Source: Macrostomum lignano (taxonomy: Eukaryota). Taken from it: a stretch of 64,000 nucleotides of DNA. Every line of letters begins with the position of its first letter. The first letter of the stretch is position 1. The notes beneath the pieces were generated by a model, which ran no database searches, was not told the DNA's origin, and saw nothing but the letters and a program-made list of their open reading frames with translations. The stretch lies in contig NIVC01000714.1 of NCBI GenBank assembly GCA_002269645.1, forward strand, positions 124,001 through 188,000. The letters are read 5' to 3'. The translations under genes were made by a program, and so were the position numbers. Below, piece by piece: positions 13,030 to 47,659 of this stretch.

Positions 13030-21654
<8,625 letters not shown>

Positions 21655-21734
21655 TGAATTCCCGAGCTGGACCATCTGAGCTCCCATAATTTTGATCATT
21701 CGAAAAATACCAAGAAGCGTATCCACTTCTTTTC

Positions 21735-23047
21735 CTATAAGCCCATCCTCCGATAAGCCCATCCTCCGATAAGCCCATCCTCCGATAAGCCCATCCTCCG
21801 TTAAGCCCATCCTCCAATAAGCCCATCCTCCGATAAGCCCATCCTCCGATAAGCCCATCCTCCGATAAGCCCATCCTCCGATAAGCCCATCCTCCGATAA
21901 GCCCATCCTCCGATAAGCCCATCCTCCGATAAGCCCATCCTCCGATAAGCCCATCCTCCGATAAGCCCATCCTCCGATAAGCCCATCCTCCGATAAGCCC
22001 ATCCTCCGATAAGCCCATCCTCCGATAAGCCCTTCCTCCGATAAGCCCATCCTCCGATAAGCCCATCCTCCGATAAGCCCTTCCTCCGATAAGCCCATCC
22101 TCCGATAGCCCATCCTCCGATAATCCCATCCTCTGATAAGCCCATCCTCCGATAAGCCCATCCTCCGATAAGCCCATCCTCCGATAAGCCCATCCTCCGA
22201 TAATCCCATCCTCCGATAAGCCCATCCTCCGATAAGCCCATCCTCCGATAAGCCCTTCCTCCGATAAGCCCATCCTCCGATAATCCCATCCTCCGATAAT
22301 CCCATCCTCTGATAAGCCCATCCTCCAATGAGCCCATCCTCCAATGAGCCCATCCTCCGATAATCCCATCCTCCGATAATCCCATCCTCCGATAAGCCCA
22401 TCCTCCGATAGCCCATCCTCCGATAAGCCCATCCTCCGATAAGCCCATCCTCCGATAAGCCCATCCTCCAATAAGCCCATCCTCCGATAAGCCCATCCTC
22501 CAATAAGCCCATCCTCCGATAAGCCCATCCTCCGATAAGCCCATCCTCCGATAATCCCATCCTCCGATAAGCCCATCCTCCGATAGCCCATCCTCCGATA
22601 AGCCCATCCTCCGATAAGCCCATCCTCCGATAAGCCCATCCTCCAATAAGCCCATCCTCCGATAAGCCCATCCTCCGATAAGCCCATCCTCCGATAAGCC
22701 CATCCTCCGATAGCCCATCCTCCGATAAGCCCATCCTCCGATAAGCCCATCCTCCGATAAGCCCATCCTCCGATAAGCCCATCCTCCGATAAGCCCATCC
22801 TCCGATAAGCCCATCCTCCGATAAGCCCATCCTCCGATAATCCCATCCTCCGATAATCCCATCCTCCGATAAGCCCATCCTCCGATAGCCCATCCTCCGA
22901 TAAGCCCATCCTCCGATAAGCCCATCCTCCGATAAGCCCATCCTCCGATAAGCCCATCCTCCGATAAGCCCATCCTCCGATAATCCCATCCTCCGATAAT
23001 CCCATCCTCTGATAAGCCCATCCTCCAATGAGCCCATCCTCCAATGA
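21735..23047. repeat. 16-bp minisatellite (ATAAGCCCATCCTCCG)n downstream of the PDE1 stop
   Basis: Directly visible; three long minus-strand ORFs are artefacts. Confidence 0.97.
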
Positions 23048-23416
23048 GCTAACAAATTCAAGTTAAATTGGAAGTGGATTTAGTCATAGAAATCTCGTAA
23101 TTGTTGTTTTCTTCCATCAAAAAAACGTGGACAGCGCCGAATTGACTACTTTTGAGTAGTATATGCCATGCCTACACATATGTGCGTACAGCTAGCTATG
23201 AATGCAATTCACGCCTGTGTATCTCTGTATATACGAGTATTTACGTAATCGTAGAAATCGTAGAAATTGGTCTTTCTGATCAGCCCAAATGGACACCAAT
23301 ATTATAGTATAATTTACAACCTAAGCGGATCGAACCTCGGGGATTGGGGATTATAGTATTTGCTATCGTTAAAAATCCCGATTCCCAACACAAACTATTA
23401 AAGTACACATGCTCTA

Positions 23417-24093: not shown

Positions 24094-24764
24094 TCTATTG
24101 CGTTCGATTAATTTCGAGTAATACATGTAGCACCTAGACCTAGACTAAGACATTAGTATAGTTGACGCTGCACTTTATTAGCAACCAAAAAATATCTAAA
24201 TTTCATGTTAACGAGTTTTTTAGCAGCCGTTTCACCGCCAGAATTGCACTGCACTTCCCACCCATTTGGCACAGCGCTTGCGTATATAGTGTAAGAATAC
24301 CTTTTCTTGCTCAGAGTGTGGATAAAGTAGATCCCTGTAAACTGAGTGCACTATATAGTATCTGCACATACATGTACAACACTGAAGAAAAAATATTATA
24401 TTAACATTCCAAATAAATTTGACTTGTATTGAGAAACACAGCATATTTTCGAATTCTTAATCCCACAAGAAATATTATGATTTCAAATTGCAAAAATTTT
24501 CAATAGAACGCATGTTTTTATTATATTCCGCATTAAGACACTACATGCCTACGAGTACAGTAGTATGATACAGATATTAGCACACAAAAATACAAATACA
24601 ATACATGATGATACGCTTGTTTGGGTATTGAAGCTAATAGACAAACAAGCAGATATGGATGCTATGGATACAGGAGAATATGTGCTAACAGTCGCTGTCA
24701 GTTTCTAGATAAGAGATGATTGAGGCACAGATCAAAGATAGGGCCGGGCCGGGGAGAGAGGGTT

Positions 24765-25010
24765 AGAGGTTCAGAGGGAGGGTCAGAGAGTCGGAGGGTT
24801 TGTGGCTCAGTGGGAGGGTCAGAGGGTCGGAGGGTCGGAGGATCAGAGGGTCAGAGGGTCAGAGGGTCAGAGGTCAGAGGGTCAGTGGCTCAGTGGAAGG
24901 GTCAGAGGGTCGGAGGGTCAGAGGGTCAGAGGGTCAGAGGGTCAGAGGGTCAGAGGTCAGAGGGTCAGTGGCTCAGTGGAAGGGTCAGAGAGTCAGAGGG
25001 TCAGTGGGTC
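24765..25010. repeat. (GGTCAGAG)n-based degenerate array; paralogous array at ~46130-46665
   Basis: Directly visible; flanking unique sequence (ACGAGTACAGTA...CACAAAAATACAAATAC) is also shared between 24550 and 45920. Confidence 0.85.
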
Positions 25011-25963
25011 ACAAGGAGAGCCATAGCCCAGAAAGGGTCATAGTTTAAAGAGGAGAATAGCCAAAGCTTAGATGGGGCACACTGTTCGTTACCCAGAGAC
25101 GGACCAACATGTAGTAAATGATTGGCATTAAAATTGTGTTCTAGCAAATTTTAATCCTAGCAAAAGACAAGAGATAGCTTTAATGTCTAAATTTGAGCAA
25201 GAAAAACTGATTATGTTTCCAACAGATCTAATCAGTGCCAATTTCTTTAAGTGAAATGGCTTAGCAACCAATATATTTATATTTTAAAAATGTATTCATT
25301 CCGGTTAAGATTCTGACCTACAGACGTAAAGAGAGAAGGTAGATAGGGAGAGAGACAGAAAGTCAAGCGACACGACTCCTAAAAATGGGAGAATTATCAG
25401 AGCATCGCAGGATTTTGTCCTCAGGCTACCTAGATCTCCAAAACATTGGTGACATTCTTAGTAAAAAAGGCATTTACTAAAAGTGCGATAGGAAAAACTG
25501 AGAAGGTATCCATTAGGTCCTCAAGATTTTAGTCAGTGGGACAAACTCTGAAACTCACGTTCGGGTGGGTTGTGTTGATGAGGGTAAGAAAATCGTCGTG
25601 ATATTTAATCTTTAATCGGATAACCTCCATCACAGATCAATAGATCATGGTAGGAAAAGCGCAATTATTAAACGAATATCTGCTGACTGTTCATCTATAA
25701 AGTTTAAATAAATATTAATGTTATAATCAAGCCTAACGTCACTCTATGTAACGTACGTATCTATTTACCTGCTTAAGAAAAATTGATAGATCATGGCTGG
25801 ATAACAAATTTGTAGGAAATGTTAATAGCGTAATAATTATTATTTTGAATAAATAATTGAATAAAGGAATAAATTTTGCGTAACAAAAAAGCAAATATTG
25901 TGAACAAGTTTTTTCTCACATCACTGTTGAGTCAGATATCCGGTCACAGATCGTCACTTCACT

Positions 25964-26353
25964 TCATAGAAATCGACATTTGTCAGTACCAATTGTCAGT
26001 TCAGTACCATAGCTTTCCCGACGATAGATTTTGGTGCCTCTTGGGAGCTCGAATGAATCTTCTTTTACTTTTAGCAAGTAGATGTCCCGTCCATCAACTG
26101 TATCAATCTTCTTAGCTCCAGGAATTAGATTCATTGGAATTTCCACCACATACCCTAATCGTTCAGGAAGTACTCTCACTCCATCCCAATTGTTCCTCTC
26201 AATAGCAGAAGTCTTTTCGTTTGGTGGCATTGACGTGCAGTAAACACCTTTCCCATAGATTGCATCGGTGGTGGTGTCAGTTGATGCTCTCAAGACGCCT
26301 GATTCCGCAATTGCCTTCGCTCCTTTTTCATCGGTGTAATGATACAACGACAT
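25964..26353 (-). CDS. Tox-ART-HYD1-like ADP-ribosyltransferase, paralogue 1 (129 aa, intronless, full H-Y-D triad)
   Basis: MSLYHYTDEKGAKAIAESGVLRAS...YGKGVYCTS...NNWDG...YVVEIP...DGRDIY: HYT strand-1 His, GxGxY Tyr and a late acidic residue fit the HYD1 ART signature; three paralogues in the window. Confidence 0.75.
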   Translation of the reverse strand: MSLYHYTDEKGAKAIAESGVLRASTDTTTDAIYGKGVYCTSMPPNEKTSAIERNNWDGVRVLPERLGYVVEIPMNLIPGAKKIDTVDGRDIYLLKVKEDSFELPRGTKIYRRESYGTELTIGTDKCRFL

Positions 26354-26439
26354 TGTCCGACCTTCAGTTCAGCAGCAGTTAGCCTGGAAATCGTGTATTA
26401 AGAATATTTCTAAAGCAGAAATTCTAGATCGAGCCTTCG

Positions 26440-26447
26440 TACTTATA
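26440..26447 (-). promoter_or_regulatory. TATA-like box (TATAAGTA) ~90 nt upstream of ART paralogue 1 ATG
   Basis: Positionally conserved with TATAAATA upstream of paralogues 3 (37876-37883) and 4 (41991-41998). Confidence 0.55.
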
Positions 26448-27804
26448 TGCCGTTGATTAACTGAGGTGCAGCCATGTAAAAAGGGAACTTGCGTCTTGAG
26501 CACTAAAAAACTTTAGGAGACGGGGGAACACGCAAGAACACTGTACATTGCACTGTACCCATTGTACTGTAGTTGCTGACACTTGTTGCTATCCTGTAAA
26601 GAATGTACTCACTTATCTCTCATTCCTTTATCTACAGTACCGTGGCACCGCACCGACTGGCTCTGCCTGGTACTCGGCTGACGTTGATGTCATCTCGCTT
26701 CGTCCGGTATCTGGAATGGAGGGTGGCCCTTATACTCTTATCATACCCATGTCTCCACTGCTGCCTTCTATTCGTCCTTTTTAGGCGCTTTATCGCTTAC
26801 TTTTACCCTTTGCACTTCTAATTGAACCTCACCTCGCTTTGGCGATTTTTTTACCTTCGCTTCATTTTATGTGGCCCAACCTTACGGATTTCTATACTGT
26901 ATAATGGTAGGTGACAAGTATGAATCGCTGGGTCTCATGAATTATAAAACTTTATAATGCTAAAATGATTTGAAACGTGTACCAGAAGTCACCTGCACGC
27001 CTCTGCCGAAGGCCCACATGCAGCTGCTACTGTGGCTGAGGCTCGTAATTCAGCCAAATGGACCAATCTGGGCGACTGGCCCGACTTTCGCCCGATCGGG
27101 ATCGAGATCCTCGGCGCCTTGAACTCCCAAGTGTTGGAATTGGCGGATACACAGCATTACGCTCGTATGCACACATTTTCAAACAATCAATCAAGCAAAG
27201 TTTGAAACGACTTGATGTTCAGTCCGGTACAAACCCAGTACCGCTTTCAGCACTGAAAAGATCCAAAAACCTTAAATTTGGAAGCTGAACTGAGAACAAA
27301 ACAAAAGCATATTTTGCGAGAGGTCTATTTCTATATTTAAGAGGATGGCGTTAGAGAGTCTTCATTACGGATATCATTTTACTTGGTTTTTACAATTTCA
27401 CTATGTATTCATTTAAACAAAACTGAGGTTAATGAGTCTATATATGAAATGAAAATTGTGGCATTGACGAACTCTGTTTCAACGATATGTCAAGCTTTAA
27501 AAAGAAAGAATCTCACAATGTTCGAGGCAATTGAGGTAGTTTTTTATATTTTTTGGTAAAGCATAATACTTAAAATTTGATTTTGTCCATGGATGAGGGG
27601 AAACCGCCCTTTTAATCATTTTGACAAAAAGCACTACTAAATGTTTATAGCTGGTTTTAATAATAATTGATAGTTGTTAATTATTAACTAAATAATAATG
27701 TTCTGCAGAACTTCGGTATTGTTGTAACAGGTACGCTACAATCGTATGAGAAATAATGACACAAATATGTTAGCCAAGGCTGAAGTCTGGAAAGTTTAGA
27801 GAGC

Positions 27805-27930
27805 ACCATAGCCTAGAAGAGGGCATAGGCATAGCTTAGATGGACATAGCCCAGAAGAGAGACATAGGCATAGCTTAGATGGACATAGCCCAGAAGAGAG
27901 ACATAGGCATAGCTTAGATGGACATAGCCC
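27805..27930. repeat. ~40-bp direct repeat x3 (GCATAGCTTAGATGGACATAGCCCAGAAGAGAGACATAG)
   Basis: Directly visible. Confidence 0.85.
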
Positions 27931-28609
27931 AGAGGATATACTGTTCGTTACTGAGAAAGGGGCCGGCTCGGTCTGAAATACCACGCACCGTTTCAAGCTA
28001 TAGTTGCATGGTAGCTCGTATATTTAAAAAACCTCCCGCAAAGCAACAAGTGCAACCACACACGGAGAGACAGACTTCCGCCACAGGTAAAAATGCAGCC
28101 ATGAGATTAAAATTTATGCAAAATTTTCTTTTAGCGCACACTCTCTTGGCAAATAGAATTTGTCTTATCTGAAGCAAATTCTAGCAAAAGACAAGACATA
28201 GATTTAACGTCGATTCTAGCAAGAAAACTAAAACAAAAAATTTCCATGTTGCCAACACGTTTTGTCGTCACACAGATGTTATCAGGCCAATTCCTTTAAG
28301 ATTTTTGATAGCTGATACAAAGTCCAAAATCAGGTTCATTCATTCCGGTAAAGATTTTCAGACTGGAAGAAAAAGAGAGAAAGGTAAGAGCGTTAGGGAG
28401 AGACAATAGGTGCAGCTGACGCTACTCTGAGCTCACTTTTCACCAGCGCTCCAACCGCTTCTCGAGTTTTTTACTGAAGTCAAGCGACGCGCCACCTAAG
28501 AATTGGAGAATAATAGGAACATCGCAGTATTCCGTCTCAGACTGCTTAGATTTCGAACCATTGGTGTGTTTTAAAGAATAAAGGTTTTGTTTGTATCATT
28601 GCACGTCTG

Positions 28610-30414
28610 TACTTTACCTTTTAACAATTTTTGGACATAAGTGAAGTTTATTCAGTCTTGGCCAGCTCAGTCCTAGAAAAGTGAGGTTGATTTACCATAG
28701 AGGGGTTTACCATAGACTATAGTAAAGAAATGGAATCGAGTCAAGTTCTTCTAAATCCGTCTTTCGTAAAGTTTTTAAGTCAAAGTGAATTTTATATAGT
28801 CGTTATAGCTAAACAAATGTGTTTAAATGGTGCAGGGTTGCCAGTCCGGGAATAACACAATCAAGCGTGTCATTGAGCGTCGCAGTGGGCGTTTCATGAA
28901 TAATATCTTCTTATAGTGGGGATCTGCCTTACAGACACGGCCCTGCAATGTTCAACCGTTTGCATTGATGAAATATACGAACAATGATGTACTTCGAGCA
29001 GCACTCACGACTCAGCACCAAGATTTCGCAGAGAGCAGAGATTGACAGAACATCCGTCACTCACAACTGCTCTGATAACGGCACCAACATCATTTAGGCT
29101 TTAAATGCACTCGCGAAGTAGTCGACATTGCTAGCTTGGGGTCGATGCGGCGGAGTATATGTACGCGAGAAGGATCTTCCACGGGTCTTTATCTTCGTAA
29201 ATCTTCGAAGCAAAGAGTCTCAGCTCAGTAGAATACTCGCCGTGCTGCAGTCTGCCTGATTCAGTGAAAATTCGATGAAATTTCTCTGAAACTTTCGAAT
29301 TCAGTTGTCCACTTCTCTTCAGTTGTTTGATTGCCACTGCAGAGGCAAATGCCTTAGACTTGGCTTATAGAAATCTATTGTAGAACCTACCCACGGCATC
29401 GCTATCTGGATAGAATGAGGCTTCTTTTGCTTGAATCAGGTTTCAAGCTTCGTTTGATAATGCGAGCTCCGTGTTGGTTCAACTGGGTCTTCAGCATCAA
29501 AGCGCTGCAGGACTGGAGGATCGGGCCATTCGTATTTCGGAACCGCTGCCGGTCTCAATATTTTTCTACTCTTACTATAAGAGCTTGGCTAGCCTGTGCC
29601 AAAGTAAGACAATCTTCGTTCTTGAATGGAGCTCACATAGGTACTTGTTAGATGTCGGTGCGAATCCTCGATCTGTTTCAACGTTGTCGAGCCAAATAGC
29701 CAGCCTCTGTGCATCTTTGACCAGATATGCAAATAAAGACAGGCCATCGCAGTTGTTTAAAGTTTTCGAATTTGATGAGCACGATTTGGCCGAACAGCTT
29801 CTTTTAATCCTTGCAGCCATCTGCAGGCCACTGCTTGACTGAGGAAATACGGACTTGAGAATTTGATAGCTCTCAGGAAGGGTTTACATGTACTATGAAT
29901 CAGCACTGCATTTTACAACGTTTTTACCATAGACAACTAAGAAATCTTCAGTAGCCAATGGATAAATAATCAGCGGTCCCAGTGTGTGACAACGATTGTC
30001 TGGCGAGCGCCGGTAGGCGCGAGCCATAGACAAATCGTTGTCACGTGCTGCGACCGCTGATTCTTTGCATTGTTTTTTTGTTTGACGATCCTACAGACAA
30101 TGCATTGTTTGTAGTAATGTATTGTTCTGCATAAAAAATGCGAATAATGATCGTCAAATTGCTAAACAATGGGTGCGAACGGGGGCTTCAAGAGGCAGAA
30201 TTGCACTCCTAAATTTAAAGCAGACGAGCAATCCATGGTTTTATTCATCCATGGTTTAAATACGTGGCACTTGATTAAATCGATTTCATTTCTTTACTAT
30301 AGTCTATAGTAAACCCCGAGTGCTGACTAAATCAAACTCACTTTTCTAGGACTGAGCTGGCCAAAGACTGAATAAACTTCACTTGTGTCCAAAAAATTGT
30401 TAAAAGGTATAGTA
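28610..30414 (-). mobile_element. Degenerate P-superfamily (THAP9/Galileo-like) DNA transposon with ~135-bp inverted repeats
   Basis: Inverted arms ~28610-28745 and ~30278-30414. The minus strand from 29820 encodes a THAP finger (SCSAKSC...LSLFAYLVKD..RLAIWL...FAPTSNKYLCELH, then frameshifted LRPAAVPKY) and frameshifted transposase-like pieces (EYSTELRLFAS; GAVIRAVVSDGCSVNL). Confidence 0.7.
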
Positions 30415-30529
30415 TCACTCGATTTGATAGGGGGTTGTAGCCTAGTTATTATCACACTCTTTCTTTCATTATATTATCAAAAGAAATGCATTCATTGTCA
30501 AACGATTTGGACCATAGACAGAATCAAAA

Positions 30530-32600
30530 TCAGTAACAAAACAACAACAAAATACGCGACCCCGCATGCAAAGTCACAGTTAAAGCAGGGCGCGTCAGAT
30601 GGCGCACCGCAAAGCCTCCGTTGGCAGTGTCGGGCGCTCCAGCCTCGCACAGCAGGCAGTCCACGTATCGACGGGTTCAGGCCTGACCCCGCCTGAACAG
30701 GCCCTGCAAGGTGAGCAGCAGGACGTCCTGAACAGGTTGGGGGCAGTAGCCCTCGGTCCGGATCACGTGGCCCGCCAGCTGTAGTCGCCGCCGGCGCAGG
30801 ATGGTGGACGGGCGCTGCAGCTTGGTCCGATCGTACAGGGCCTCGATCCTGACGCTCTCGTCAGCTCGAAATGCCGCACGGAGCAGCCCTGAGTGCGCCG
30901 AGTCCAGCTGCCGCTCTAGCGTAGCCGTCAGCGTCCACGTCTCGGCGTTTAAGAGCAGGACGGTTTCGACCACCGCCTGCCACAGCCGACCCCTCTGGCG
31001 GTCGGACAGCGCTTCGGACTGGACGACGGCCCAGATCGAATGGAAGGCCGCTCAGGCAAGTCCTCTGCGCCGCCGGAGGTCTTCCTCCACGTGAGGCACC
31101 AGACCGCTGAGGTAGGTGAACCACTGGCAGCGTGTGAACCTGGTCGTCTGCCCGTATGCGCCGCGGCACGTCAGGTTCATTGGGATGTCGGCCGGCACAG
31201 TCAGCACCTCGGTCTCCAAGCGTGTTGATAACCAGACCGACGCTCGATGCCACCTCGACCAGCCTGTCGATCTGGCGCTAAGTGCCTTTAACGGACGAGA
31301 ACAGGAGGGCGAGGTCGTCGGCGTAGCCAAGCACGCTCAGGCGCTTTTCGCCGTGGCGGCGACCGATGCGTCTTCGCAGCAGGAAGCCGTCATTAGCCGA
31401 GGGGAGTGCGGTCCGAAGCACCCAGTCTAGCAGCAGCACGAAGAGGAACGGCGCCAGCGTGTCGCCCTGCAGAACTCCTGATGAAGTGTCGAACAGGTCA
31501 GACAGGCCGTCCAAAGTCACCACAGCAGCTCGAGTGTAGCAATACAGCGCCATGACAGCGTCGACTAGCTGCTGGGCTATCCGGTAGGCTCGTAGGACAA
31601 AGGGAAGCGCAGTTGGTGACGCGACGGCGCTCGCATCTGCGAACCAGCGCATGATCGAGTTGCGCCAGTCTCCTCGTGGTGTTCCGCCCGCGTGCGTTCC
31701 GCCGCCTTCTCTCGCAGCCCGCAAAGGTGACCAGGCGGGCAGGGGGCTTGCGGAACTGAGTGTTCGCGGACACCAGGTCCAGCCGGTCAAGCAGATTCTC
31801 CAGCGTATCGGTGTTGGCGTTCTCGCGTCCCGCGACAAAGGGCGAGCGCTCGGACCTCCGCGGGACTGCGTTCAGGTCTCCGAGCACCGCCAACGTGTCG
31901 CGGTTTGGAGCCTCTTCCAGCTGCCGAGCCAGGAAGTCGAAGAAGGCACGAGCCTCCTCGGGGTGAGCAGCGGTGGGTGCACACGGGCAGAACAGCCGGA
32001 TGCAGCGGGCGCGCAGTCGCAGGTCGACCGCATCAGTCGCGGGGACAGCGAGATGCAGTGCACGCTCTGCTGGAGGCGCGGTCCGATCAGCACGCCGACA
32101 CCGCCCCGGCCGCGGTTGTCTGCCGACGTGTACAGGAGACTCCAGCCGGCTCCGAGGTCCTCAGAGTGGAGCCCCGGCTCAGCCACGATAGAGACCTTTT
32201 GCAGCGAGACGAGGTCCAGCTGTAGGTCGTGGGCCAGCTGGACAAGGATGGTGCGACGCCAGGGGGCCTTCAGAGTTCGGCATTTCATCGTGGCGAGTCT
32301 GAGGCGGTCACCTGGTACAGCTGCGGCCAGATTGAGGTTGACCTCATGGTCCCCGGCGCCACCCGGCGGATCCATAGTTGAAATAACAAGCGACTGGGGA
32401 CAACAGGCGCCTAGCCGCGCCACGGAGTCGCCCTCGCTGGTTGCGCTCGCGCTGCCGCTCAGTGCGACGTTGTGCGCTGCGCCGACCTCTGCGAGTCCCT
32501 TCTGTGTGGAACTTTTTGCTGCCGCAGCCGAAGCGCGGCCGTCCGAGCCAACCGAGGTCATCCGCGCGGCCTGATGATCTGGCCGCGATGCCAGGAGGTG
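30530..32600 (-). mobile_element. RTE-type non-LTR retrotransposon, internally deleted and frameshifted
   Basis: APE endonuclease (RLATMKCRTL...LDLVSLQK...GRGGVGVLI...VLGDLNA), RT (SGVLQGDTLAPFLFVLLLDWVL...LGYADDLAL) and RTE C-terminal motif (VLLLNAETWTLT...RRRLQLAGHVIR); (TTG)n-like tail near 30535. Confidence 0.88.
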
Positions 32601-33120
32601 TCGGCATTTTTTGCACGGGTGTGCAAATATAATGGCTCATTAGACAGTGAAACAATTTAGAATACTTTTCCTGCTTCTTCCTACTGTTAGTAGAACTTGG
32701 TTGCTGCATCCAAGCCTTCCAAAATTTTTTCTTCGAATCAACAGTTACTGCCTGTCTGCGTGCTGCCTTTGCTGTGTTGCTTTCTCTACAATGCTTTTTG
32801 CTGCTTTCAGTTCTGATAGTTGAAAATAGAGACAAACAAATAGACCATGACATTTTTTGTGATTCTATATTTTATTTTTGCATGAATATTTAGTCCAGTT
32901 TGTAAAACACTTTAACTATAAGCATCTCAGACGCGAATGTGGAGGTAGGAGGTAGGATATTGTTATAGTTACATCCACGAGTTATGAATATGAAGGTGTT
33001 TCAGATTCTTAAGTACGCATATATTCAAGTTAAAAATATTATTGCATATCAATTTATGTAAACGGAAAAATTCCACTGCAGACAATGGTCAGCATCATTG
33101 GGTAAGAAAATTATTATTTA

Positions 33121-34026
33121 TGTAGTGACTGGCTGCCAACTGGTTATTCAGCAGCATTCACTAGCTTCCCCTAAGAGTGCTGTGATCCGCTGCACAGTAG
33201 CTCAGTCCACCTGATCTAGTGAGAGAGATACCCTGTGCTGGGCCTAAGTGTTTACTGCCCGATGACTCATCGCCTGAGCGGGCGCGGCAGCCACACTCAA
33301 TGTTTTCCCCTCCCGCGCCGAGGAGGCGTAGCAGGATGACTCATCACCTGCGCGGAGTGTAAGGGCTGCCTAGAGGGAGTAAACAGGATGACTCATCCGC
33401 CCAAGTTCTATTTTTAGCACAGAATAAGCACGTGACTGTGCACGCACGCGGTGCGTGGCCACTGACCTTGAGTCACGCCACAGCTGCGCGACAGGCTTGC
33501 CTTATTTGGAAGTCGGCCTTGAATCACGCGTCGCTCGCATGATTTTAGGGACCAAATAAGGAAGTTTCACGCGTTCACCGCATGAAACTCACGCGACTTT
33601 TGGGGGTCCGCTCGGCTATAAATACGGAGCATCTGCGAGCCATTTTTCTCCAGACTGCGTCGTCTCGCGGAGCATCGTGGCTGACTCGTGAAGCCTTCTC
33701 CGAGCTCTCCTCTCTCATTTCAGGTTTTTCAGGTTTTCAGGTTCGAGCAGCATTCTACTAAGACGATCGACTGTCGAGACATTTTCAGATTTGCCTTTGC
33801 TCCGAGCGTTTTCGTTATTTTATTTCAGGTGACGGATAGACAACTCTACCGACGCGTCGAGTCCGCACACCAAGGTGGCAGCAACCCTACCAAGTCAAGG
33901 CTAACGTTTTAGGTTCATTTTCAGGCAAATCGATAGGTAGTACAACGGTGCTATCTAGCTACTTCAGGAGCAGTGGGTTCTATTTCTAGGAACATCTTCA
34001 AGAACCCGAGAAGGAGTAGCGTAACA
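33121..34026 (+). mobile_element. Solo LTR (Gypsy-type, 906 bp)
   Basis: Starts TGTAG, ends TAACA, 4-bp TSD TTTA on both sides (33117-33120, 34027-34030); TATAAATA at 33617; several TGACTCA/TGAGTCA AP-1-type motifs upstream of the TATA. Confidence 0.75.
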
Positions 34027-34230
34027 TTTAGCTATTTAAGAACATATCTGCTGACAGTTCGAAATGCAGAGCAGCAGGATTCTTTTTGAAACTGGCTCTG
34101 AAATAGTTTATTAATAGTTAAAACATTAATATACGGCTCGTATTAATATATAAAAGTGTAAACACACGGATAGGCGCTATAAAAGAAAGAGTTTTTCTCA
34201 CACCCTCATTCCACTCAGTCAAATGTCGAG

Positions 34231-34581
34231 TCATTTGCCGTAGCTTTCGCGAGGGTAAATTTTGCTGCCTTCTGGGAGCGGGACCGGATCTTCTCCTTTT
34301 GCCATATAGATGTTCCGTCCATCACGCGTGTCAATCTTCTCAGCTGGAAACGACTCCTTTGGAATTTCCACCACATACTCTAATCGTTCAGCAGGTACTC
34401 GCATTCCATCGTAATTGTTCTTCTCGATGACAGCAGTAGCTTCGTCTGGTGAAATCGACGTGCAGTAAACACCTTTTCCATATAGTACATCGTTGGTGGT
34501 GTCAGTAGATGCTTTCAAGACGCCGGATTCCTCAATTGCCTTTGCTCCTTCTTCATCGGTGTAGTGATACAACAACGACAT
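34231..34581 (-). CDS. Tox-ART-HYD1-like ADP-ribosyltransferase, paralogue 2 (116 aa, third triad position D>N)
   Basis: MSLLYHYTDEEGAKAIEESGVLKAS...YGKGVYCTS...NNYDG...YVVEIP...DGRNIY; collinear with paralogue 1. Confidence 0.75.
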   Translation of the reverse strand: MSLLYHYTDEEGAKAIEESGVLKASTDTTNDVLYGKGVYCTSISPDEATAVIEKNNYDGMRVPAERLEYVVEIPKESFPAEKIDTRDGRNIYMAKGEDPVPLPEGSKIYPRESYGK

Positions 34582-36169
34582 GGTGAAACCTTCAGTTCAG
34601 CAGCAGCTAGCCTGGAAATCGTGTGTTTAATAAAATACGAGTATTGCTAAAGTTGAAATTCTAGCTAGAGCCTTGAAATTTATCTACTGCTGATTAGCTG
34701 AGGTGAAGCCATGTACGCTCGTAAAAGGGAACTTGCGTCTTGGCCATGCTAAAAAAGTGAAGAAGACGTGGAAACATACGAGTACTCTGCGCACAAATAT
34801 AGTATCCTGTACTCATTGTACTGTAGTTGCTGGCGCTCTTCTGGCTATACCCAGAAAGAACGTACACTCAGTCTCGTCTGACTCATATTTGTCTAGTGTA
34901 CAGAGTTCCGTGTTCGGGTCTGAACCAAAAATGTATCACGGCCCTAAATATGTTGCCTCAAAAAGTAAAATATTATTTTCGGCTAAAAATAGGTTTGACA
35001 GCTGATTTTGGTGCGTGCCAAGTATGAATCGCTGGGTTGTAGTTATAAATTTTAAATCTTACAAACTGTATTTAGCAATCGTCTGCATTTTCTGCCGTGT
35101 TTGGGGTACACGAATACTATCATTGTTACTATCTATAAATGACAGTAGTTATAATTGTTATAATTGACCGCCCCAGGTACCCCCTTCCCCCCTTGATGGC
35201 CAAACGGCAGGGCGGCCTGCGGGCGGCCACTGAGCGGCTCGTCAGCATCGACCGGCCCGACGGCGTCCCCCTGCCCTGCTGCGGGTCTCGTTGAGCCACC
35301 ACCGGCCCCTACGCATCGGCATCTGGGCGCCCTCCTGGTTTCCGCTGCACCCATGGCTCCCTTTGCGGACGAGCTCTGCGATGGTGCACCGGACCGCTCG
35401 GGCAGCGCCAAATCTGCAGACCCTCCCAGCAGCCAGCAAGCGCCGACTGCGAGCCTCATGGAGCCCAGAGGTGTGGAACGCCTGCACCCTGCCTCCAGGC
35501 CTGAATCCGTGAACTTGTGACTCCGAGACATGTTAATTGACGGAGGCAGGTTTTCCCCTCCCCATGCTGCTCCTCCCCTCCATCGCTTCGATAGCGTCAC
35601 GTACGTAGCCTGCTAAAACGCGACCGTCGTGCACAACTGCGCCTGCCGTAATAATAAGCCGAAACGTACCTGAACGCCTCTGCCGTCTCCTCACCTGCAG
35701 CAAGCAGACGATAAAACTGCTGCACGGTCATTATACTCGTACATAGCTGGTATTAAAGAAATACGCTCATATGCATAAATTGTCTTTATAAGTACATTTT
35801 AAAACGAATCAAGGTTTCAGCCTACCATTTTTCAGCCTACTTTTAGCAGCACTGAAAAGCACAAAACCTTTAATTTAGAAACAGAACAGAAAACAAAGCA
35901 AAAACAGATTTTACAAGAGGTAAATTGTCACATCAAAGTTTGGAGATAATTCGGCCAGCTAAATCGTTGGTTGGTATTGGTCGCAAATCAGTGATGATTC
36001 TAAGTAACTGTCGGTTCCAAAGAAAGTAACCTCCGGCACCTGTTCCGGTGTAACTTCCTGTAGTTCCGGTACCGACTCTTTCTAATTATAAAAAACCGTG
36101 AGATTGAAATTGCTTAAACGTGCCTTTGTCTTTGGTCTGAAGGTCACGGGGTCAAAAGGTCTACCAAGA

Positions 36170-36795
36170 GGAGTGGAAAAATTCCCCAACGGACAATTTT
36201 TTTGCTTCGCCGTATTAGAGCGACGCAGGCATACGAAATTCAAGAACACGGGCTAACTTTTTGTTTCGCACCTTCTCAAACAAGAATCAAGTCGCCAAAG
36301 TGGTCCGTGTGATGACTGAATGCTCGAGAGAGACCAGCTGAGGATGCCTGGCAGTTGAGGCTTTCCCACTGTCGAGGCTTGATCGGGCGAAACTCGAGAA
36401 ATTTGCAACAGAGTGTCCATAGTGACCTGGTGCCACCTGTTGAAGCTCCAGAAGCTCCGTCTGGGCGAAGGTCAGTGACCAACGAAGTCAGAGCTGATGC
36501 AGACACATGTAGCCGACGTGCTACTGAAATTTGGAGGCTTGGCAAGGCTGCACTGAGGCAGCCTTGTGGTGCTGATTGGCGCACAGGGGTGTACTGAATG
36601 CACTGGCGCTTATGGGAAAAATCCGATCTTCGGGCAGAATCGTTAAATATCTCGACGGTCTTGAGGACTGGCGACTTGATTCTTGTTTGAGAAGGTGCGC
36701 AACAAAAAGTTAGCCCGTGTTCTGGAATTTCGTATGCCTGCGTTGCTACAATACGGCGCAGCTAGCAAAAATTGTCATGGGGGAATCCCCCTTTT
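36170..36795. mobile_element. Non-autonomous long-TIR DNA transposon (~120-bp arms)
   Basis: 36181-36297 (..GGGCTAACTTTTTGTTTCGCACCTTCTCAAACAAGAATCAAGTCGCCA) is the near-exact reverse complement of 36669-36787. Confidence 0.8.
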
Positions 36796-37456
36796 GGCAC
36801 ATGTAATTCTACTTTAATCTGAACATGTGCTTGTATATAAACCTAGTATTTTTATAGGGGCTCGTATTTTTATAGTGGGACGATTATTTTTCTTTGTTTG
36901 GTAATGGTCTAACTAATGATAACTTGTGGATAACGAGTAACGGTAACGGGAAAAATGTCCAAAGGTATCGATCGAAATAACGAAAAAACCAATAACACTG
37001 ACAATAACCAATGTATACGATACTCGTATATTTTAATTTATAAACAATATTGATAGAAAGTACAAAGTCCTAAAGTCCGGTTCATTAATATAGGTAAAGA
37101 TTCAGAGTTACAAAAGGAAAGAGAGGAAGGTAGAAAGGGAGAGAGATGGGCATATCTGCTGACGGTCCGATATTCAGTACAGCAGGATCCATCTAAACTG
37201 GGCTCTCATTGCAGTGCTGGTCTATAAATTTTCAATTGATATTAAACTATTACTATATGACTACAAGGACTACTTTAGTAGATTTTCATGCTACTTTAGT
37301 CTGTAAAAATCTGTTCTGCTCTTCAGAATTTCGCTTTTCAGACTGCCGAGACAGTAAAGTGGTGAGGAAAGTGCAGTGTACGAGGCTAAAGGGATGCGAG
37401 TGACGCACGTACCTGTTACCTGCTTAAGGAAATTGATGAAATAACTGGATGAAAAA

Positions 37457-37789
37457 CTAAAAATGAAGTACGTGACAGTAAACTTTGGTGCCCGGAGGGA
37501 GCGGGAGTGGATATTCTTCCTTTTCCATGTAGTCGTCCGGTCCATCCGGCGTGTCAATCTTCGAAGCTGGCAACGAACCCTTTGGAATTTCCACCACACG
37601 GCTTACTCGTTCAGCAGGTACTTTCATTCCATCCCAATTGTTCCTGATAGTTTTGTCTGGTGAAATCGACGTCATCTTTGCTGCATATTCAACTGCTGCA
37701 TCGCTGGTGGTGTCAGTAGATGCTTTCAAGACGCCGGATTCCTCAATTGCCTTTGCTCCTTTTTCATCGGTGTAATGATACAACGACAT
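37457..37789 (-). CDS. Tox-ART-HYD1-like paralogue 3 (110 aa), GxGxY motif replaced, probably catalytically dead
   Basis: Same N-terminus and downstream motifs (NNWDG, VVEIP, KIDT.DG), but YGKGVYC is replaced by VEYAAKM in frame, plus a ~6-codon in-frame deletion. Confidence 0.7.
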   Translation of the reverse strand: MSLYHYTDEKGAKAIEESGVLKASTDTTSDAAVEYAAKMTSISPDKTIRNNWDGMKVPAERVSRVVEIPKGSLPASKIDTPDGPDDYMEKEEYPLPLPPGTKVYCHVLHF

Positions 37790-38494
37790 GATCCGGCCTT
37801 CAGTTCAGCAGCAGTTAGACTTAGAATTGTGTATCGAGAATGTTGCTACAGCTCAAATTCTAAATCGCGCCCTCTTATTTATATGCCGTTGATTTGCTGA
37901 GGCGTACCAGCTATAGTTATACGAGCGCCATAATAGGGAACTTGCGCCTTGCACACGAAAGATTGTAGACGGGGAAATACACAAGTACACTGTACTGTAC
38001 TCATTATACTGTAGTTGCTGACACCGCCTCCTGATATTTCGTAAAGAATGTACTCACTCTCCTCTCACTCATTTCTGTAGTATCGCGTTCTTTAGTACCG
38101 CGCTTTTGTTTGAGTCCTACTTATAAGGTACCAAAATTCATCACGGACATAAATAAATGTAAAATTTTCAAAAATAGGTCTGACGTTACAACACGGTGTC
38201 GGCTAAGTCCAGCGGAGTCGGAACCTTTTTCAAAATGGGGGGCTGCCTCCTTCTGTTCCTCTTGGCGCTGTCTCTTTATTCTTCTTAAGTGATTTTGGTT
38301 GCAGCGTTAGCAGCGGTTTAAGTCTAGGGATTGCGGCGGACTTGGAATTTCGATCAGAGACGCCCATGTAAAACGGTAAACACTAAAACAGGGGTCGGCA
38401 AACTTCGGCCTGCAAAGCTTCTCTATTCTGCCCTTGGGACCTTTGAATCTTCACAATTGCAATCCGGGTCCGCTCGATGTTTGTCTCTTCTCAG

Positions 38495-39200
38495 CTCTCT
38501 TCTCTCACCTCTCCTATCCTGTCCTCTCCTATCCTGTCCTCTCCTATCCTGTCCTCTCCTCCCCTCTCCTCTCCTATCCTCTCCTCTTCACCTCTCCTCT
38601 CCTCTCCTCTCTTCTCCTCTCCTCTCCTCTCCTCTCCTCTTCACCTCTCCTCTCCTCTCCTTCCTCCTCTCATCTCATCTCCTCACCTATCTTCTCTCCT
38701 CTTTTCTTTTCCGCTCCTCACCTCTCTCCTCTCTCCTCTCTCCTCTCCTCTCCTCTCCTCTCCTCTCTCCTTCTCTTTCCTCTCCTCTCCTCTCCTCTCC
38801 TCTCCCCTCCTCTCCTCTCCTCTCCTCTCCTCTCCTCTCCTCTCCTCTCCTCTCCCCTCCTCTCCTCTCCTCTCCTCTCTCCTCTTCTCTCTCCTTTTTC
38901 TCTTATCTCCTCACCTATCTCCTCTCCTCTCTCCTTCTCTTTCCTCTCCTCTCCTCTCCTCTCCTCTCCCCTCCTCTCCTCTCCTCTCCTCTCCCTTTTC
39001 CTCTAGATTCTCTTCTCCCTTCTCACCTCTCTCCTCTCCTTCTCTCCTCTTTTATATTTCGTCTCTCCCCTCCTTATTCATCTCCCCCTCTCCTCTCCTA
39101 TTTTATCCCTCCTCTCACCTACTCTCTTTTCCTTTATTCTTTCGCCTGATCTCTTTTCTCATGCGCTCGTAATTCTCTTCTCTATTCCTTACCTCTCTCC
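38495..39200. repeat. (CTCTC/CCTCT)n pyrimidine-rich low-complexity tract
   Basis: Directly visible. Confidence 0.95.
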
Positions 39201-40620
39201 CTCCTCTGGCCCGCAGTCATCAGGACTCTTGGGCGAGCTTCGCTTAGGGCCCATCGAAGCGGACCCGAAGGGCAATCATTGCGCTAGGTTCTCAATCTTG
39301 CCCTTGAGGTAAAAAGTTTGCTAACCCCTGTACTAAAATCACTAGGCTTAGGCACATTAGATAAAAAGTTTGTCTTATAAAAATTGTAAATACAAATTGT
39401 TTTTAGCATTTGGCTACATATTCTGTCCAACAAAAATCAGCTTTCGTATTGTAGTAATAGTAATAAAAAATGATAATGGTAATAATATTTTCAGTAGTAT
39501 AAAAAAATTCCAAACACACACACACACACACACACACCTCATTTTGCATGTAAAAATCAATAGATTCTTCACCGCGGATCCCTCAACTGTACTTCACACA
39601 TTTCGTTCATTTCTAACAGGTCGAAATGAACAGACGTCCAACCCCAATCCGCTCAAGCTTGCGTCTTATAATAAGGTACGAATCGATCGCCCCTCCTTAT
39701 CTCATACGACATACGTAGTACGTACGCTACGGCGTTTCTTCAAAGAAATATAGAATCCAAAGTCCAGTTTCTCTTTAATCATGTCCATTTATTTGCGAAA
39801 GTAGAATAGTTAATCCGTGGCAGCTCCGCACACATCAATAACGAAGTAAGCAAATTTTCCGGAATTTAAAATTGCAGATAATTAATCGCTAAAGAACGCA
39901 AATGCCCATAACAAGAATTAAACAAATTATCATTGCTACCGCCAAAAATCATTCTCTCTAAAAAATCCCGCAAACCACCACCACGACTCAGCTCAAAGTA
40001 TACAAAAGTAATACTCATATACCACCCACAGTATACATGCTTTTTGGCTCTTAAACAGTGAAACGCAAATATTCCCAAATTTCATCCAAAATTCCGTATA
40101 CACTGTTTTGCTTGTTGAAATATGTGGTAATTGGAGCTAATGTGCAGACGCGCAATTTATATTTCTTAATTGAACACAAATTACATATACAATAGAAATC
40201 GAGAGAGTTGTTGATCGGCCATTAAACGCTCTGCCATATCGGAGTGCTTCTCGTAAGCCAGGTCGGGTAAAAGACAATTTATCACGCCAATTTATCCCAG
40301 TTTCACTTCATGCCAAACGCTCCCCTATAGCCTGGTCCCGGGACAGAAGAATTGGTTTGAAGCTCCCACGGGATTAAGCACCCAATTAACAATATCAAAC
40401 CTGTCTGACTTCGACGAGATTTCCTAGCTCGAGTCGACTTTGCTGCTGCCGAACGCACTCGTTTCCTCTTCCCATCTCACTTGATTCTACTAAAAGAGAC
40501 TTGCATGTGCAAATTCACGAGCAGTTTATATTTTAAAAAGCAAAGTGAACCCGCCACCAATGCACAATTCCCACCACCACCAGATGCTGGTGCTGCCCGG
40601 CCAATCAGCTCGGCCAACTT

Positions 40621-40929
40621 CTACAGGGGCGTGGCACAACGCTCCAGAACCAGCTGGACCACTTGGGTCGCACACGGCAGATGAATCTTCTCATCTGTTG
40701 TGTTATACAGGATGACGCGGAGCTAGTTCCCCGGCAAAGTTAAGCCGATTGGCCCAACTTAAGCGGCTCGCGATTCGGCCATAGGTGCCGGGTGGCAGGA
40801 TGACGCGAAGGCCTGTGCGTATGATGGCTGTGTCACAGGCCTCCACGACCCGGTCTTCATAGGTAGCTAAATCATAGCCGATTGATCCTGCCGTGCCCCC
40901 GCCGCGGCATCACAGCGCCGTGATCCATC
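40621..40929 (-). pseudogene. dut: Intronless dUTPase pseudogene
   Basis: Minus-strand pieces MDHGAVMPRR/GTAGSIGYDLATYEDRVVEACDTAIIRTGLRVILPPGTYGRIASRLSWA...FAGEL/RVILYNTTDEKIHLPCATQVVQLVLERCATP match trimeric dUTPase motifs 1 (GYDL), 2 (GRIA.R) and 4 (..QLVLER); two frameshifts, motif 3 partly deleted, motif 5 absent. Confidence 0.75.
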
Positions 40930-41789
40930 TAGTACTCCATCGTAGCTGAGGGTTCACAGTTAATCGGATGCTTAGCTAACATCTAAAATAAGTCAATTTT
41001 AGCTTCATCACACACACAATAGTAAATTCGCGGTAAAATAGTTATTAGTTACGTAAATTCTTACAATCAAACTCTTGCCAACTCTGCTGAGCGCGTGTGT
41101 TCGCGGGCCACTGAATCGAAAAACGAAGCTCGCGATGGCAGTTCAATCACGCTGTCCAACTTCTCTTCAGAGTCCAAGTAGCAATACGGAAACTTTAGGG
41201 ACAGGTTATAAATATGGAGGCCGGAGAGTTTGATTAGGACGCATTTATATAAGCAGAATATAGCATTGCTGGATTGAAAATTTGGGAGGTTTGCAGCCTG
41301 AGTTTAGAACACGGGTGGTGTTTTCCCGTGGAGGAGCATATGTAGGTCAGTTGGTAGAAAGATACGAGTATCGGAAGGAAGTTGTGTTGTCTTATCTCTA
41401 TGCTAATATAATGAGGATAAAAGAAGGTAAGCAGCCGTGCCATATAGCTAGTGTGAATTTTCGTATTAAGGGGAGAAGCCATTGAGTTCGAGGGAAAAAT
41501 GCGAGCTTCAAGCTAGCTAAGGAGTTGTGCCTTAGTTATTCTAAATGGGAAGTAAATGATCGCGCGGTAGCAGAAGAATTGGTCTTTGAGTTGAATATTT
41601 ATTTACTGGAATAGATTAGACACATACTTAAGTAAAGCTGTACTTAAGCTTTACAAACGTACGCAGGTTGTTTAAAATTCTTTGGACGCTACTTTAAGCA
41701 TCGTGAGAGTACGAGATCATTTAATTAACAATATTATAGATTGGCACTGCATGCTAAAACGGCCCTTGACGGGGCTACCTAAGCTGACG

Positions 41790-41904
41790 TCACACACCTT
41801 TACCAAATGCTGCATCTCTTTTTGGTGTCAGTAGATGGGTTCAAGACGCCGGATTCCTCCATTGCCTTCGCTCCTTTTTTATCGGTGTAATGATACAACG
41901 ACAT
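41790..41904 (-). pseudogene. Tox-ART-HYD1-like paralogue 4, frameshifted and truncated
   Basis: MSLYHYTDKKGAKAMEESGVLNPSTDTK, then a frameshift in an A-run; the alternate frame reads RDAAFGKGV* and homology ends; upstream leader and TATA retained. Confidence 0.8.
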
Positions 41905-42194
41905 GGTGCGGCCTTCAGTTCAGCAGCAGCTAGCCTGGAAATTGTGTGATTAAACGATTTCTTAAGCAGAAATTCTAGATCGAGCCTTCGTATTTATATT
42001 CCGTAGATTAGATGAGGTGAAGCCATGTACTCGTACTCTCGTAAAAGGAACTACATGTAGATGGAGGAAATACACAAGTACACTGTACAATGTACTACGA
42101 GCTATACTCATAGTACTGTATACATGTACATGTACAGTCCATGTACGTCGTAGTTGCTCGCACTTCCCCGCTCTCTCGTAAAGAATGTACATAT

Positions 42195-42702
42195 CAGGGG
42201 CGTCGCCAACGGGGGGGGGCAGGGGGGACATGTCCACTCTAGTAAAATATCTGGGGGGGACATGCCAATTAATGCTTTGTCCCCCCCCACCCCAACTAGC
42301 TTGTGACCAGTTATGGAAATCAATAATTTTGCTGCAGGGCGACGAAACATAGCGCCTGTGGCACGAAAATGATGCCTGCGACGCTAAAATGAGTGCCTGC
42401 GGCGCTAAAATGAGTGCCTGCGGCGCTAAAATGAGTGCCTGCGGCGCTAAAATGAGTGCCTGCGGCGCTAAAAAGAGTGCCTGCAGCGCTAAAATGAGTG
42501 TCTGCGGCGCTAAAGAGAGTGCCTGCGGCGCTAAAATGAGTGCCTGCGGTGCTAAAATGAGTGCCTGCGGCGCTAAAATGAGTGCCTGCGGCGCTAAAAT
42601 GAGTGCCTCCGGCGCTAAAACGACAATTAAGTAGTCCGTGCACCGATTCTGAAAATAATGTACAAGTAGGTATTTAGTTATGTACACTAGGGCGACACCC
42701 TG
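42195..42702. mobile_element. hAT-like MITE with internal 21-bp tandem repeats (copy 2)
   Basis: CAGGGGCGTCGCC ... GGCGACACCCTG termini; internal (GCCTGCGGCGCTAAAATGAGT)n is the reverse complement of the array in copy 1; inserted in the upstream region of ART paralogue 4. Confidence 0.7.
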
Positions 42703-42916
42703 CATGTACTCATTCCTGTATAGTACCGTTCTTCCTTGCATCGTACGTATAAGGTACCAAAATTCTTCGCGGGCCCAAATATATTTTGCCTCAAAATCTA
42801 TAAAAATTTATTTTTTGGCCAAAAAATAGAATTGATGTTACACGTACAATTACAACATAGCAACGACACGAAAAACAGGAGATTTCGGTTTGTGCCAAGT
42901 TTGAAGGGCTAGGTCT

Positions 42917-45417: not shown

Positions 45418-46129
45418 CTATTCACATATCACTATCACATAATTTACTAGTCAGTTAATAAATGTGGATTGCCGAACTTAAAGTCAAACGATTTCCAATT
45501 TCCAATTGGAAAAATTCAAGCTTATGAAGTACAAGTAAAGCAACACAAACGGTCGGTGGCCAAACTTTCTACATTCTATCTTGCCTCTGCATATACATGT
45601 GCAAAATTGAAAATAAATTGCTATAAAATGTCAAATAAATTTGACATGTAACAAGAAATTTAGCTTTCTTAGAATTCTTAAAACCCCCCGAAAGATGAAA
45701 ATTCATATTATAAACATTTTCAACGGAACACATTTGTATTATTTACTGCATAGAGACAATGACAAGAATAACAAAAAATCAATGATGGACAAGTGTAAGT
45801 AAAGTATAAATTAGCACAAAGACAATAAAAATGCAAACTTATTTCAACAGATTACTAGCAGTAGCAGCTGCGATCATAAAAGTAAATGAATTAATAGCAC
45901 GCTAATGCACACATGCACATACGAGTACAGTATTGTTATAGACTTTAGCCACAAAAATACAAATACATTTAAACATGATAAATCACCCTTTGAATTAAGA
46001 TAGCTAACTAAAAGACAAACAAGCGAAGATGAATGCTAAAAATACAGGAAAATATGCGCTAAGAATTGTTGTTTTGTTTCTAGATAGAGACAATTCAAGA
46101 ACAGATAGGGGAGAGATGGGGCAGAGAGA

Positions 46130-46665: not shown

Positions 46666-46691
46666 TCACAGCCAGGAGAGAGCTGTATTGC

Positions 46692-47612: not shown

Positions 47613-47659
47613 AGCTGGCAGGTGTAACTGGGTTGCAGCTGGAATTTGTGGTGTGTGCA

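Follow-up and report, generated by a model that had tools for sequence, protein, structure and literature searches.

Tre23, the C-terminal toxin of an Rhs protein of Photorhabdus laumondii, is the only biochemically characterised member of the Pfam family PF15633, Tox-ART-HYD1; it ADP-ribosylates helix 44 of 23S rRNA while leaving rabbit reticulocyte translation unaffected, and its putative catalytic residues, H8 and Y33, have been mutated in toxicity assays (PMC8661411). A second protein of the HYD1 clade of ADP-ribosyltransferases (ARTs), the myxobacterial YarT, is a toxin in Escherichia coli that a guanine-ADP-ribose hydrolase neutralises; a direct assay of YarT's substrate could not be made (PMC11125620). 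Zhang et al. (2012) placed HYD1 in bacteria only, noting HYD2 in eukaryotes, and identified the cargo-binding domain of metazoan myosin VI as a homologue of the HYD1 immunity domain Imm-My6CBD. In the literature we searched, eukaryotic HYD1 proteins find no mention, and the ART-HYD1 papers there all concern bacteria. Here we describe a tandem array of four small HYD1 genes and gene remnants, designated c1 to c4, in a 64,000-nucleotide stretch of DNA from Macrostomum lignano (contig NIVC01000714.1, positions 124,001 to 188,000), referred to below as the window. The evidence makes it probable that c1 and c2 are functional intracellular enzymes of the ART family, maintained in an array shaped by gene birth and death.

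The whole array, as delimited by blastn and alignment of the repeated units, occupies positions 25294..42914 of the window on the minus strand. An earlier note on this DNA had called four minus-strand paralogues, and the list of open reading frames (ORFs) together with tblastn and blastn self-searches of the window recovers all four at its coordinates; the same self-searches found no further copies elsewhere in the 64 kb. Two of the copies are intact. The first, c1 (25964..26353, minus strand), is a stand-alone HYD1 ART gene of 129 aa supported by the ORF list, Pfam, an AlphaFold2 model and residue conservation, and c2 (34231..34581, minus strand), of 116 aa, is supported by the ORF list, Pfam and alignment; the two match each other at tblastn E 6e-47 with 67% amino acid identity. 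The 13-aa C-terminal tail by which c1 runs past the c2 stop position is predicted to be disordered, residues 120-129 of the model having a pLDDT below 50, and in c2 an AATAAA is located 119 nt past the stop. The third copy, c3 (37457..37789, minus strand), is a degenerate open frame of 110 aa, identified by the ORF list, alignment and Pfam, that matches c2 at tblastn E 1e-38. The last, c4 (41794..41904, minus strand), is a pseudogene fragment, recognised by self-search and alignment, that matches only the first 27-33 codons of the other copies (E 1e-9 to 6e-11). The size range of 110-129 aa previously given for the family therefore holds for c1, c2 and c3 but not for c4, in which just 27 codons are in frame, and the motif set LYHYT, GKGVYCT, NN[WY]DG, VVEIP and DGR[DN]IY, described as shared by all, is complete in c1 and c2 but not in c3 or c4. 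LYHYT itself has been kept in c1-c3 and, in c4, within the part still in frame.

Assignment of these genes to Tox-ART-HYD1, the H-Y-[D/E] clade of ARTs, had been proposed from the sequence alone and is borne out by profile scores, a structure model, fold matches and profile-profile alignment. Against a gathering threshold of 25 bits, PF15633 scores 44.1 bits for c1 (E 3.3e-11), 50.1 bits for c2 (E 4.6e-13) and 34.5 bits for c3, the next-best Pfam match being PARP, below threshold. An AlphaFold2 model of c1, built from a 60-sequence alignment, has a pLDDT of 87.8 and a pTM of 0.82, with a 10-residue tail alone disordered. [quoted passage not shown] The check that the earlier note had suggested, a profile and structure search against Pfam and the ART folds of the PDB, thus places PF15633 above its cut-off and ART folds at the top. 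On these results c1-c3 belong to the PF15633 family, and the predicted structure of c1 has the split beta-sheet ART fold. No sequence homologue was found in the PDB by either a single-sequence query or the family profile, and neither PADLOC nor NCBIfam gave a match; a search of viral folds in BFVD gave weak results, mostly unannotated phage proteins along with Tpt1, DarT and PARP-like entries.

Conservation of individual residues was read from an alignment of 172 sequences, consisting of c1, c2 and 170 relatives of 90-200 aa. The His of xHYT occupies all 169 non-gap rows, and Tyr38, which in c1 and c2 closes the motif GKGVY, is present in 170 of the 172 sequences. Gly34, Gly36, Ser24, Asp30 and Asn54/55 each occur in at least 158 rows, Thr40 and Pro44 are nearly invariant, and Arg89 is found in 145 sequences. 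Position 90 is Asp in 104 sequences, Asn in 24, Ser in 10 and Gln in 4. The complete series, H5, S24, D30, G34, G36, Y38, T40, P44, N54, N55, R89 and D90, is carried by c1, where Asp90 directly precedes a strand predicted by the AlphaFold2 model at residues 91-94.

Compared with the two studied enzymes, the window genes combine familiar and divergent traits. With Tre23 they share PF15633, the xYHYT His motif, a Tyr in the second strand and a minimal ART domain of ~100 aa; Tre23, however, is the cleaved C-terminus of a PAAR-Rhs protein delivered by a type VI secretion system and has an immunity protein, Tri23, whereas the window genes are stand-alone and eukaryote-encoded, and the spacing from His to Tyr is 33 residues in the window genes and 25 in Tre23. 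YarT resembles the window proteins in being a small, stand-alone, globular HYD1-clade ART of simplified fold, but it comes from bacteria, its triad is H-Y-E, and its partner is a NADAR/YbiA antitoxin, a hydrolase of a kind not found in the scanned ORFs of the window.

From family, fold and residues we infer an activity of the following kind. The products of c1 and c2 would be minimal ART catalytic domains of ~13-14 kDa and, because they have no signal peptide, delivery domain or regulatory domain, would act within the producing cell, in cytosol or nucleus. The claimed lack of a signal peptide is consistent with the sequences, in which the longest hydrophobic run within the first 30 residues is 2-3 and the catalytic His is already residue 5 or 6. 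NAD+ would be bound by His5 and Tyr38, and Asp90, at the start of strand beta5, would assist the transfer of ADP-ribose onto a macromolecular acceptor, that is, mono-ADP-ribosylation. A different possibility is that the proteins are not transferases at all but NADases or NAD+-binding signalling proteins, converting NAD+ to nicotinamide and ADP-ribose and depleting it, as in cell suicide. An ART-like fold has been repurposed as an NADase in RHS toxins, Tne5 (PMC13285283), and the window proteins offer a minimal domain without an obvious substrate-recognition extension, with c2 having Asn at the acid position and an acidic composition overall. Yet Tre23, the only PF15633 member to have been assayed, has no measurable NADase activity (PMC13285283) and is a true RNA transferase (PMC8661411), and the H-Y-[DE] set is intact in c1; we judge NADase action improbable.

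For the acceptor itself, the weakest step of the proposal, analogy makes nucleic acid more likely than protein, because Tre23 modifies 23S rRNA, YarT is countered by a guanine-ADP-ribose hydrolase, and the c1 model resembles Tpt1/KptA. Active mono-ARTs with a protein target, perhaps one of the translation factors, like the targets of diphtheria toxin, exotoxin A and TreTu, would agree with the appearance of those three proteins and PARP14 among the structural matches, and with the neutral to acidic character of c1 and c2. The TM-scores to those proteins are, however, no better than those to Tpt1/KptA, and RNA or guanine bases are what the evidence from both studied members of the HYD1 clade suggests; we consider a protein target unlikely.

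Upstream of the coding sequences, the conserved leader that had been noted before each copy is confirmed: some 270-300 nt 5' of the ATG align among the copies at 69-80% identity, while the distal upstream sequence beyond is essentially unalignable. The leaders, defined by alignment, blastn and segment identities, lie on the minus strand at 26354..26640 for c1 (a putative promoter and 5' untranslated region), 34582..34901 for c2, 37790..38079 for c3 and 41905..42120 for c4, the last two with TATAAATA at -94. At this distance of 94 nt from the ATG every copy has a TATA-like box, which reads TATAAAT in c3 and c4, TATAAGT in c1, and, degraded, GATAAAT in c2. All four copies have A at -3 and an in-frame TGA 6 codons before the ATG, which itself stands only 3-4 codons ahead of the HYT motif. 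Just upstream of the c4 leader is an array of a 21-mer in 12.8 copies.

The two remaining copies have decayed in different ways. Where the other copies have DAxYGKGVYCTS, c3 reads DAAVEYAAKMTS, with EYAAK instead of GKGVY; it carries the substitutions G34E, G36A, Y38K and R89P and a 4-codon deletion, DGPDDY replaces DGRDIY, and its 3' end differs from that of the other copies, the C-terminus and native stop having been lost. It is probably a pseudogene or a pseudoenzyme. The ~24 nt that are almost unrelated to the other copies, at ~37670-37700, are exactly the GxGxY codons of c3, the flanking codons being conserved, and the string ATGCAGCA is present twice within this stretch, suggesting not a drift of point mutations but a single small event, of templated repair or replacement, as the cause of the motif's loss; a micro-inversion was also considered, and on a by-eye check was not supported. 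In c4, 27 in-frame codons (MSLYHYTDKKGAKAMEESGVLNPSTDT) are followed by a 1-nt insertion and stops, the GxGxY motif is out of frame, and homology stops near 41794.

By the method of Nei and Gojobori, c1 and c2 are separated by a synonymous divergence (dS) of 0.36, with a ratio of nonsynonymous to synonymous divergence (dN/dS) of 0.52; dN/dS is 0.72 for c1 against c3 and 1.28 for c2 against c3. These values, from a small sample, fit weak purifying selection on c1 and c2 and neutral decay of c3. They bear also on the proposal that c1 and c2 are themselves dead relics, unexpressed open frames kept by chance, as might be supposed when half of the copies are plainly decayed, both intact copies have a weaker TATA-like box than the decayed ones, and the c1-c2 ratio is only mildly below 1. 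But the open frames of c1 and c2 persist despite that synonymous divergence, c1 retains 15 of 15 family-invariant residues and c2 14 of 15, the leader is conserved at 80% where the flanks cannot be aligned, and intact relatives exist in several animal phyla. There is, we believe, only a small chance that both are relics.

Homology between the units extends, in patches, ~0.6 kb downstream and ~1 kb upstream of the coding sequences. Downstream, 25294-25355 pairs with 37084-37146 and 34043-34099 with 37151-37206; farther up, 27153-27329 pairs with 35757-35926, and both 34924-34998 and 38093-38175 match 42721-42835. Because this patchy homology runs beyond the leaders, the duplicated segments would originally have been at least 2 kb long and have eroded since, and the pattern indicates that the array arose by old segmental tandem duplications of at least that size. 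The units have been eroded by indels, a LINE (long interspersed nuclear element) fragment at ~30.5-32.9 kb, a THAP fragment and minisatellites. What was duplicated, at the DNA level, would be a coding sequence of ~115-130 codons in a single exon, together with the conserved proximal promoter and leader that belong to it. The earlier description of the genes as intronless stands for the coding sequences, which are uninterrupted, but reaches no further than these; the untranslated regions may contain introns.

Intronless coding sequences in a region rich in transposable elements (a LINE reverse transcriptase, THAP and Gypsy) could also be read as transposon cargo or internal parts of transposons, or as retrocopies multiplied by transposition. 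We find this very unlikely. All copies are in tandem on one strand, and a like tandem arrangement is seen for the homologues of other animals; blastn and alignment of the units within this one window found no terminal inverted repeats or long terminal repeats (LTRs) bounding them, and no transposase or reverse transcriptase lies inside, so that the ORFs do not appear to be part of a known transposon; that they were such parts is what the earlier note had named as telling against its reading. Since the common unit includes sequence 5' of the promoter and the copies stand in tandem on one strand, segmental duplication rather than retroposition or transposition is indicated, and copying from a transcript in particular is unlikely because the common unit has ~175 nt upstream of the TATA-like box.

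The window proteins themselves have no exact counterpart in a collection of 15 billion proteins. Exhaustive searching with HMMER, over a set of 1.84 billion representative proteins, brought up 366 relatives at E <1e-3, the best of them 48% identical. Among the best 150 of these 366, 136 are no longer than 200 aa and two exceed 400 aa; most relatives in the 172-sequence alignment begin no more than ~12 residues from the HYT motif, and stand-alone relatives of ~110-145 aa number several hundred. Named members include Mizuhopecten yessoensis LOC110441257, Exaiptasia diaphana LOC110239668, Periplaneta americana ANN_16565 and a protein of Allacma fusca. Like c1 and c2, the proteins of these four animals are stand-alone, 112-145 aa in length, and equipped with the same invariant residues, but their identity to the window proteins is only 33-38%. 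Some of the named animal members are already labelled "Tox-ART-HYD1 domain-containing protein" in databases and others "uncharacterized"; because databases already attach the HYD1 domain to animal homologues, the locus counts as a member of a known though unstudied family.

The family had earlier been called lineage-specific. With relatives in cnidarian, mollusc, insect and collembolan genomes this does not hold for the family as a whole, but it does hold for the local duplications: the paralogues of the array are 57-70% identical to one another and at most 50% identical to anything else known, and so are nearer to each other than to any other known relative. Tandem arrangement recurs elsewhere, in all three of the longer loci that were re-scanned. 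The scallop locus contains a single-exon coding sequence with a second copy and a fragment, and two long eukaryote-like contigs have two full copies each, ~4 kb and ~9 kb apart, one contig also with fragments. The loci of four metagenome-derived relatives are gene-poor and eukaryote-like. Logan contigs of homologues have no poly(A) tails, which is uninformative on transcription.

Several relatives depart from the minimal form. In P0122, of 193 aa, HYD1 is followed by EF-hands, and P0019 joins HYD1 to a C-terminal transmembrane segment, variants that hint at calcium regulation and membrane anchoring, respectively, in some lineages. P0023 has four HYD1 domains in one protein of 636 aa. The 1019-aa predicted protein P0003 is made up of ~56-aa tandem repeats, 16 of which weakly match c2 residues 27-56; possibly it represents a satellite that arose, in some other genome, from part of a HYD1 gene.

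A scan of bacteria and archaea, with one genome per species, found bacterial relatives as the C-termini of RHS or RHS + HINT toxins of 1756-1779 aa, each with a small immunity ORF after it. Toxins of this kind from Paenibacillus ferrarius, Lachnospiraceae metagenome-assembled genomes and Pseudobacteriovorax sp. (loci L005-L009) are 38-49% identical to the window genes over part of the domain, and share with them LYHYTDxxGAxxI, the NN motif, and an acid with a hydrophobic strand (NELIF, resembling RDIY); this last correspondence, of the Asp90 region with NELIF, was matched by eye, the hhalign and Pfam alignments ending before that region. Aligned by hhalign with three RHS toxin domains, the animal-type family gave 97.1% probability (E 5e-11). 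The differences are several. RHS toxins have delivery modules, RHS and in some cases HINT, and a downstream immunity ORF, where the window genes stand alone; the Paenibacillus toxin domain, the sole one scanned, reaches 23.1 bits, below the PF15633 cut-off, where the animal genes reach 34-50 bits; and the animal-type proteins have an insertion of ~8 residues between strands 1 and 2 that carries the subfamily-invariant Ser24 and Asp30. A bacterial origin of the animal-type family is plausible from these comparisons and, if it occurred, would be old: the genes have the G+C content of their flanks, and to the best bacterial match their identity is 38-49%, across a part of the domain. Three of the bacterial immunity ORFs (L005:5299-6171, L006:5303-5710 and L008:3967-4350) share an N-terminal motif, LxLHxALLEAKF...SP, and one of them also has a SUKH/SMI1_KNR4 domain; the Pfam model of the myosin-VI cargo-binding domain matches none of the three.

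The window is eukaryotic, and most likely metazoan, by its sequence content. Exons of the PDE1 catalytic domain lie at 17413-19252 on the plus strand (PDEase_I in Pfam, E 9e-29), in five tblastn-aligned blocks with short gaps between them. Identity of the blocks to a human PDE1A probe segment is 42-67%, or 58-67% where the alignment has no gaps; arrays of minisatellites overlap the blocks and continue after them. We considered and rejected the idea that the HYD1 array is nested in a PDE1 intron, the PDE1 catalytic exons ending by ~19.25 kb and the array lying downstream. The cohesin-associated PDS5 is represented by an N-terminal exon at 299-739 (minus strand, Pfam E 2e-13), and a short-chain dehydrogenase by an exon at 55280-55600 (minus strand, adh_short E 2e-11). 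A Gypsy-type LTR retrotransposon with protease/reverse transcriptase, RNase H and integrase ORFs occupies 58043-61700 on the plus strand, with related ORFs to ~62.9 kb; it is frameshifted, its ORFs sitting in three overlapping frames, is GC-rich (0.56-0.60), and has best database pol matches just 54-63% identical. Between c1 and c2, both on the minus strand, are a THAP-domain fragment identified by Pfam (29578-29883) and a degraded, GC-rich LINE (~30500-32870), in which 31281-31871 gives a weak RVT_1 match. Minisatellite or low-complexity arrays, at 8327-9205, 17612-23061, 24757-25011, 38331-39172, 42354-42620, 46029-48095 and 52534-53400, yield long spurious ORFs in several frames and strong local GC and AT skews, and an HP1/chromodomain identity entertained for the ORF at 47244-48101 was dropped for want of Pfam support. 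Rfam yielded no match.

In this setting it is scarcely credible that the array derives from contaminating bacterial DNA or from a chimera made in assembly. Bacterial toxins are where the domain is best known, but over 17 kb the copies alternate with eukaryotic repeats, with eukaryotic exons on either side, the G+C content of the HYD1 genes (0.43-0.47) is that of the flanks, the nearest relatives are genes in eukaryotic rather than bacterial contexts, and the scans made of the window found no RHS or immunity genes.

The earlier note saw no immunity or hydrolase gene nearby, and this was upheld within the limits of Pfam scans of selected ORFs and of tblastn. The three immunity proteins of the nearest bacterial loci, searched by tblastn against the window, gave nothing better than E 0.085. 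Pfam was also run on 20 chosen ORFs no shorter than 90 aa, of which 13 fall in 23-45 kb, and in that interval found just the reverse transcriptase and THAP fragments, a scan that leaves short exons possible and included no search aimed at Imm-My6CBD; ADP-ribose hydrolase domains (NADAR/YbiA, macrodomain) were absent from the ORFs covered by this limited scan. Nor is an RHS or trafficking module fused to any of the window HYD1 genes. The genes do not qualify as a polymorphic toxin system or a toxin-antitoxin pair, because a delivery module, an immunity gene and a bacterial context are all missing.

Several observations weigh against c1 and c2 being functional enzymes of the proposed kind. With no partner hydrolase or immunity gene found by the scans, the cell's tolerance of an active toxin-type enzyme is left unexplained, and the reading has to presume that copies in the window are transcribed and translated. 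The PF15633 alignment spans profile positions 1-74 of 97, and, because it ends at position 74, the region of the acid residue is unmatched by the profile; in c2 the predicted catalytic acid position is Asn (GRNIY), the remaining invariant residues being kept. The Foldseek E-values of the c1 model are all >1e-3, so that the ART-fold call leans on agreement among the matches and not on one strong match. The c1-c2 dN/dS, taken over 115 codons, amounts to weak constraint. Finally, the isoelectric points of c1 (6.6) and c2 (4.65) are not basic, where the family median is 8.0, and because a neutral c1 and an acidic c2 are atypical for nucleic-acid-modifying enzymes, caution is due over a nucleic-acid acceptor.

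Animals are known to use bacterial-type toxin domains: pierisin and CARP-1 are animal-encoded DNA-ADP-ribosylating toxins, and tick Dae2 is a domesticated bacterial effector. These are precedents without family-level homology to HYD1, pierisins being ARTs of the R-S-E clade with ricin-type lectin domains and Dae2 a secreted amidase. For functional HYD1 enzymes in the window, a role in conflict or immunity would fit better than a housekeeping one, because the copies turn over and tandem arrays recur in other animals. A more specific conjecture, drawn by analogy with Tre23, which strikes bacterial 23S rRNA and spares eukaryotic translation in the reticulocyte system, and in our estimation unlikely, is that the animal HYD1 proteins are domesticated nucleic-acid ADP-ribosyltransferases serving as cell-autonomous immune effectors against non-self RNA or DNA, whether of intracellular bacteria, organelle-like symbionts, viruses or transposons. 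With a non-self target, no immunity or hydrolase gene would be needed, and the fast-turnover tandem arrays across invertebrate phyla would be accounted for. More speculatively still, toxin-derived and immunity-derived modules might continue to interact in animals, an idea made conceivable by the homology of Imm-My6CBD to the myosin VI cargo-binding domain (Zhang et al. 2012).

The array presents, in one place, a compact natural experiment: an intact copy with Asp at the acid position, an intact copy with Asn, a copy with a dead motif, and a fragment. The biology of ADP-ribosylation in animals centres on PARPs, ecto-ARTs, sirtuins and Tpt1. Minimal HYD1 enzymes that stand alone, forming a family widespread in invertebrates and akin to a bacterial toxin that modifies rRNA, do not figure in the literature we searched, and the present result is the correct annotation of this uncharacterised, database-visible family rather than a demonstrated new mechanism. 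If active, its members would constitute a new class of animal enzymes that ADP-ribosylate nucleic acid or protein, and would be a further example of animals having domesticated a weapon of bacteria.

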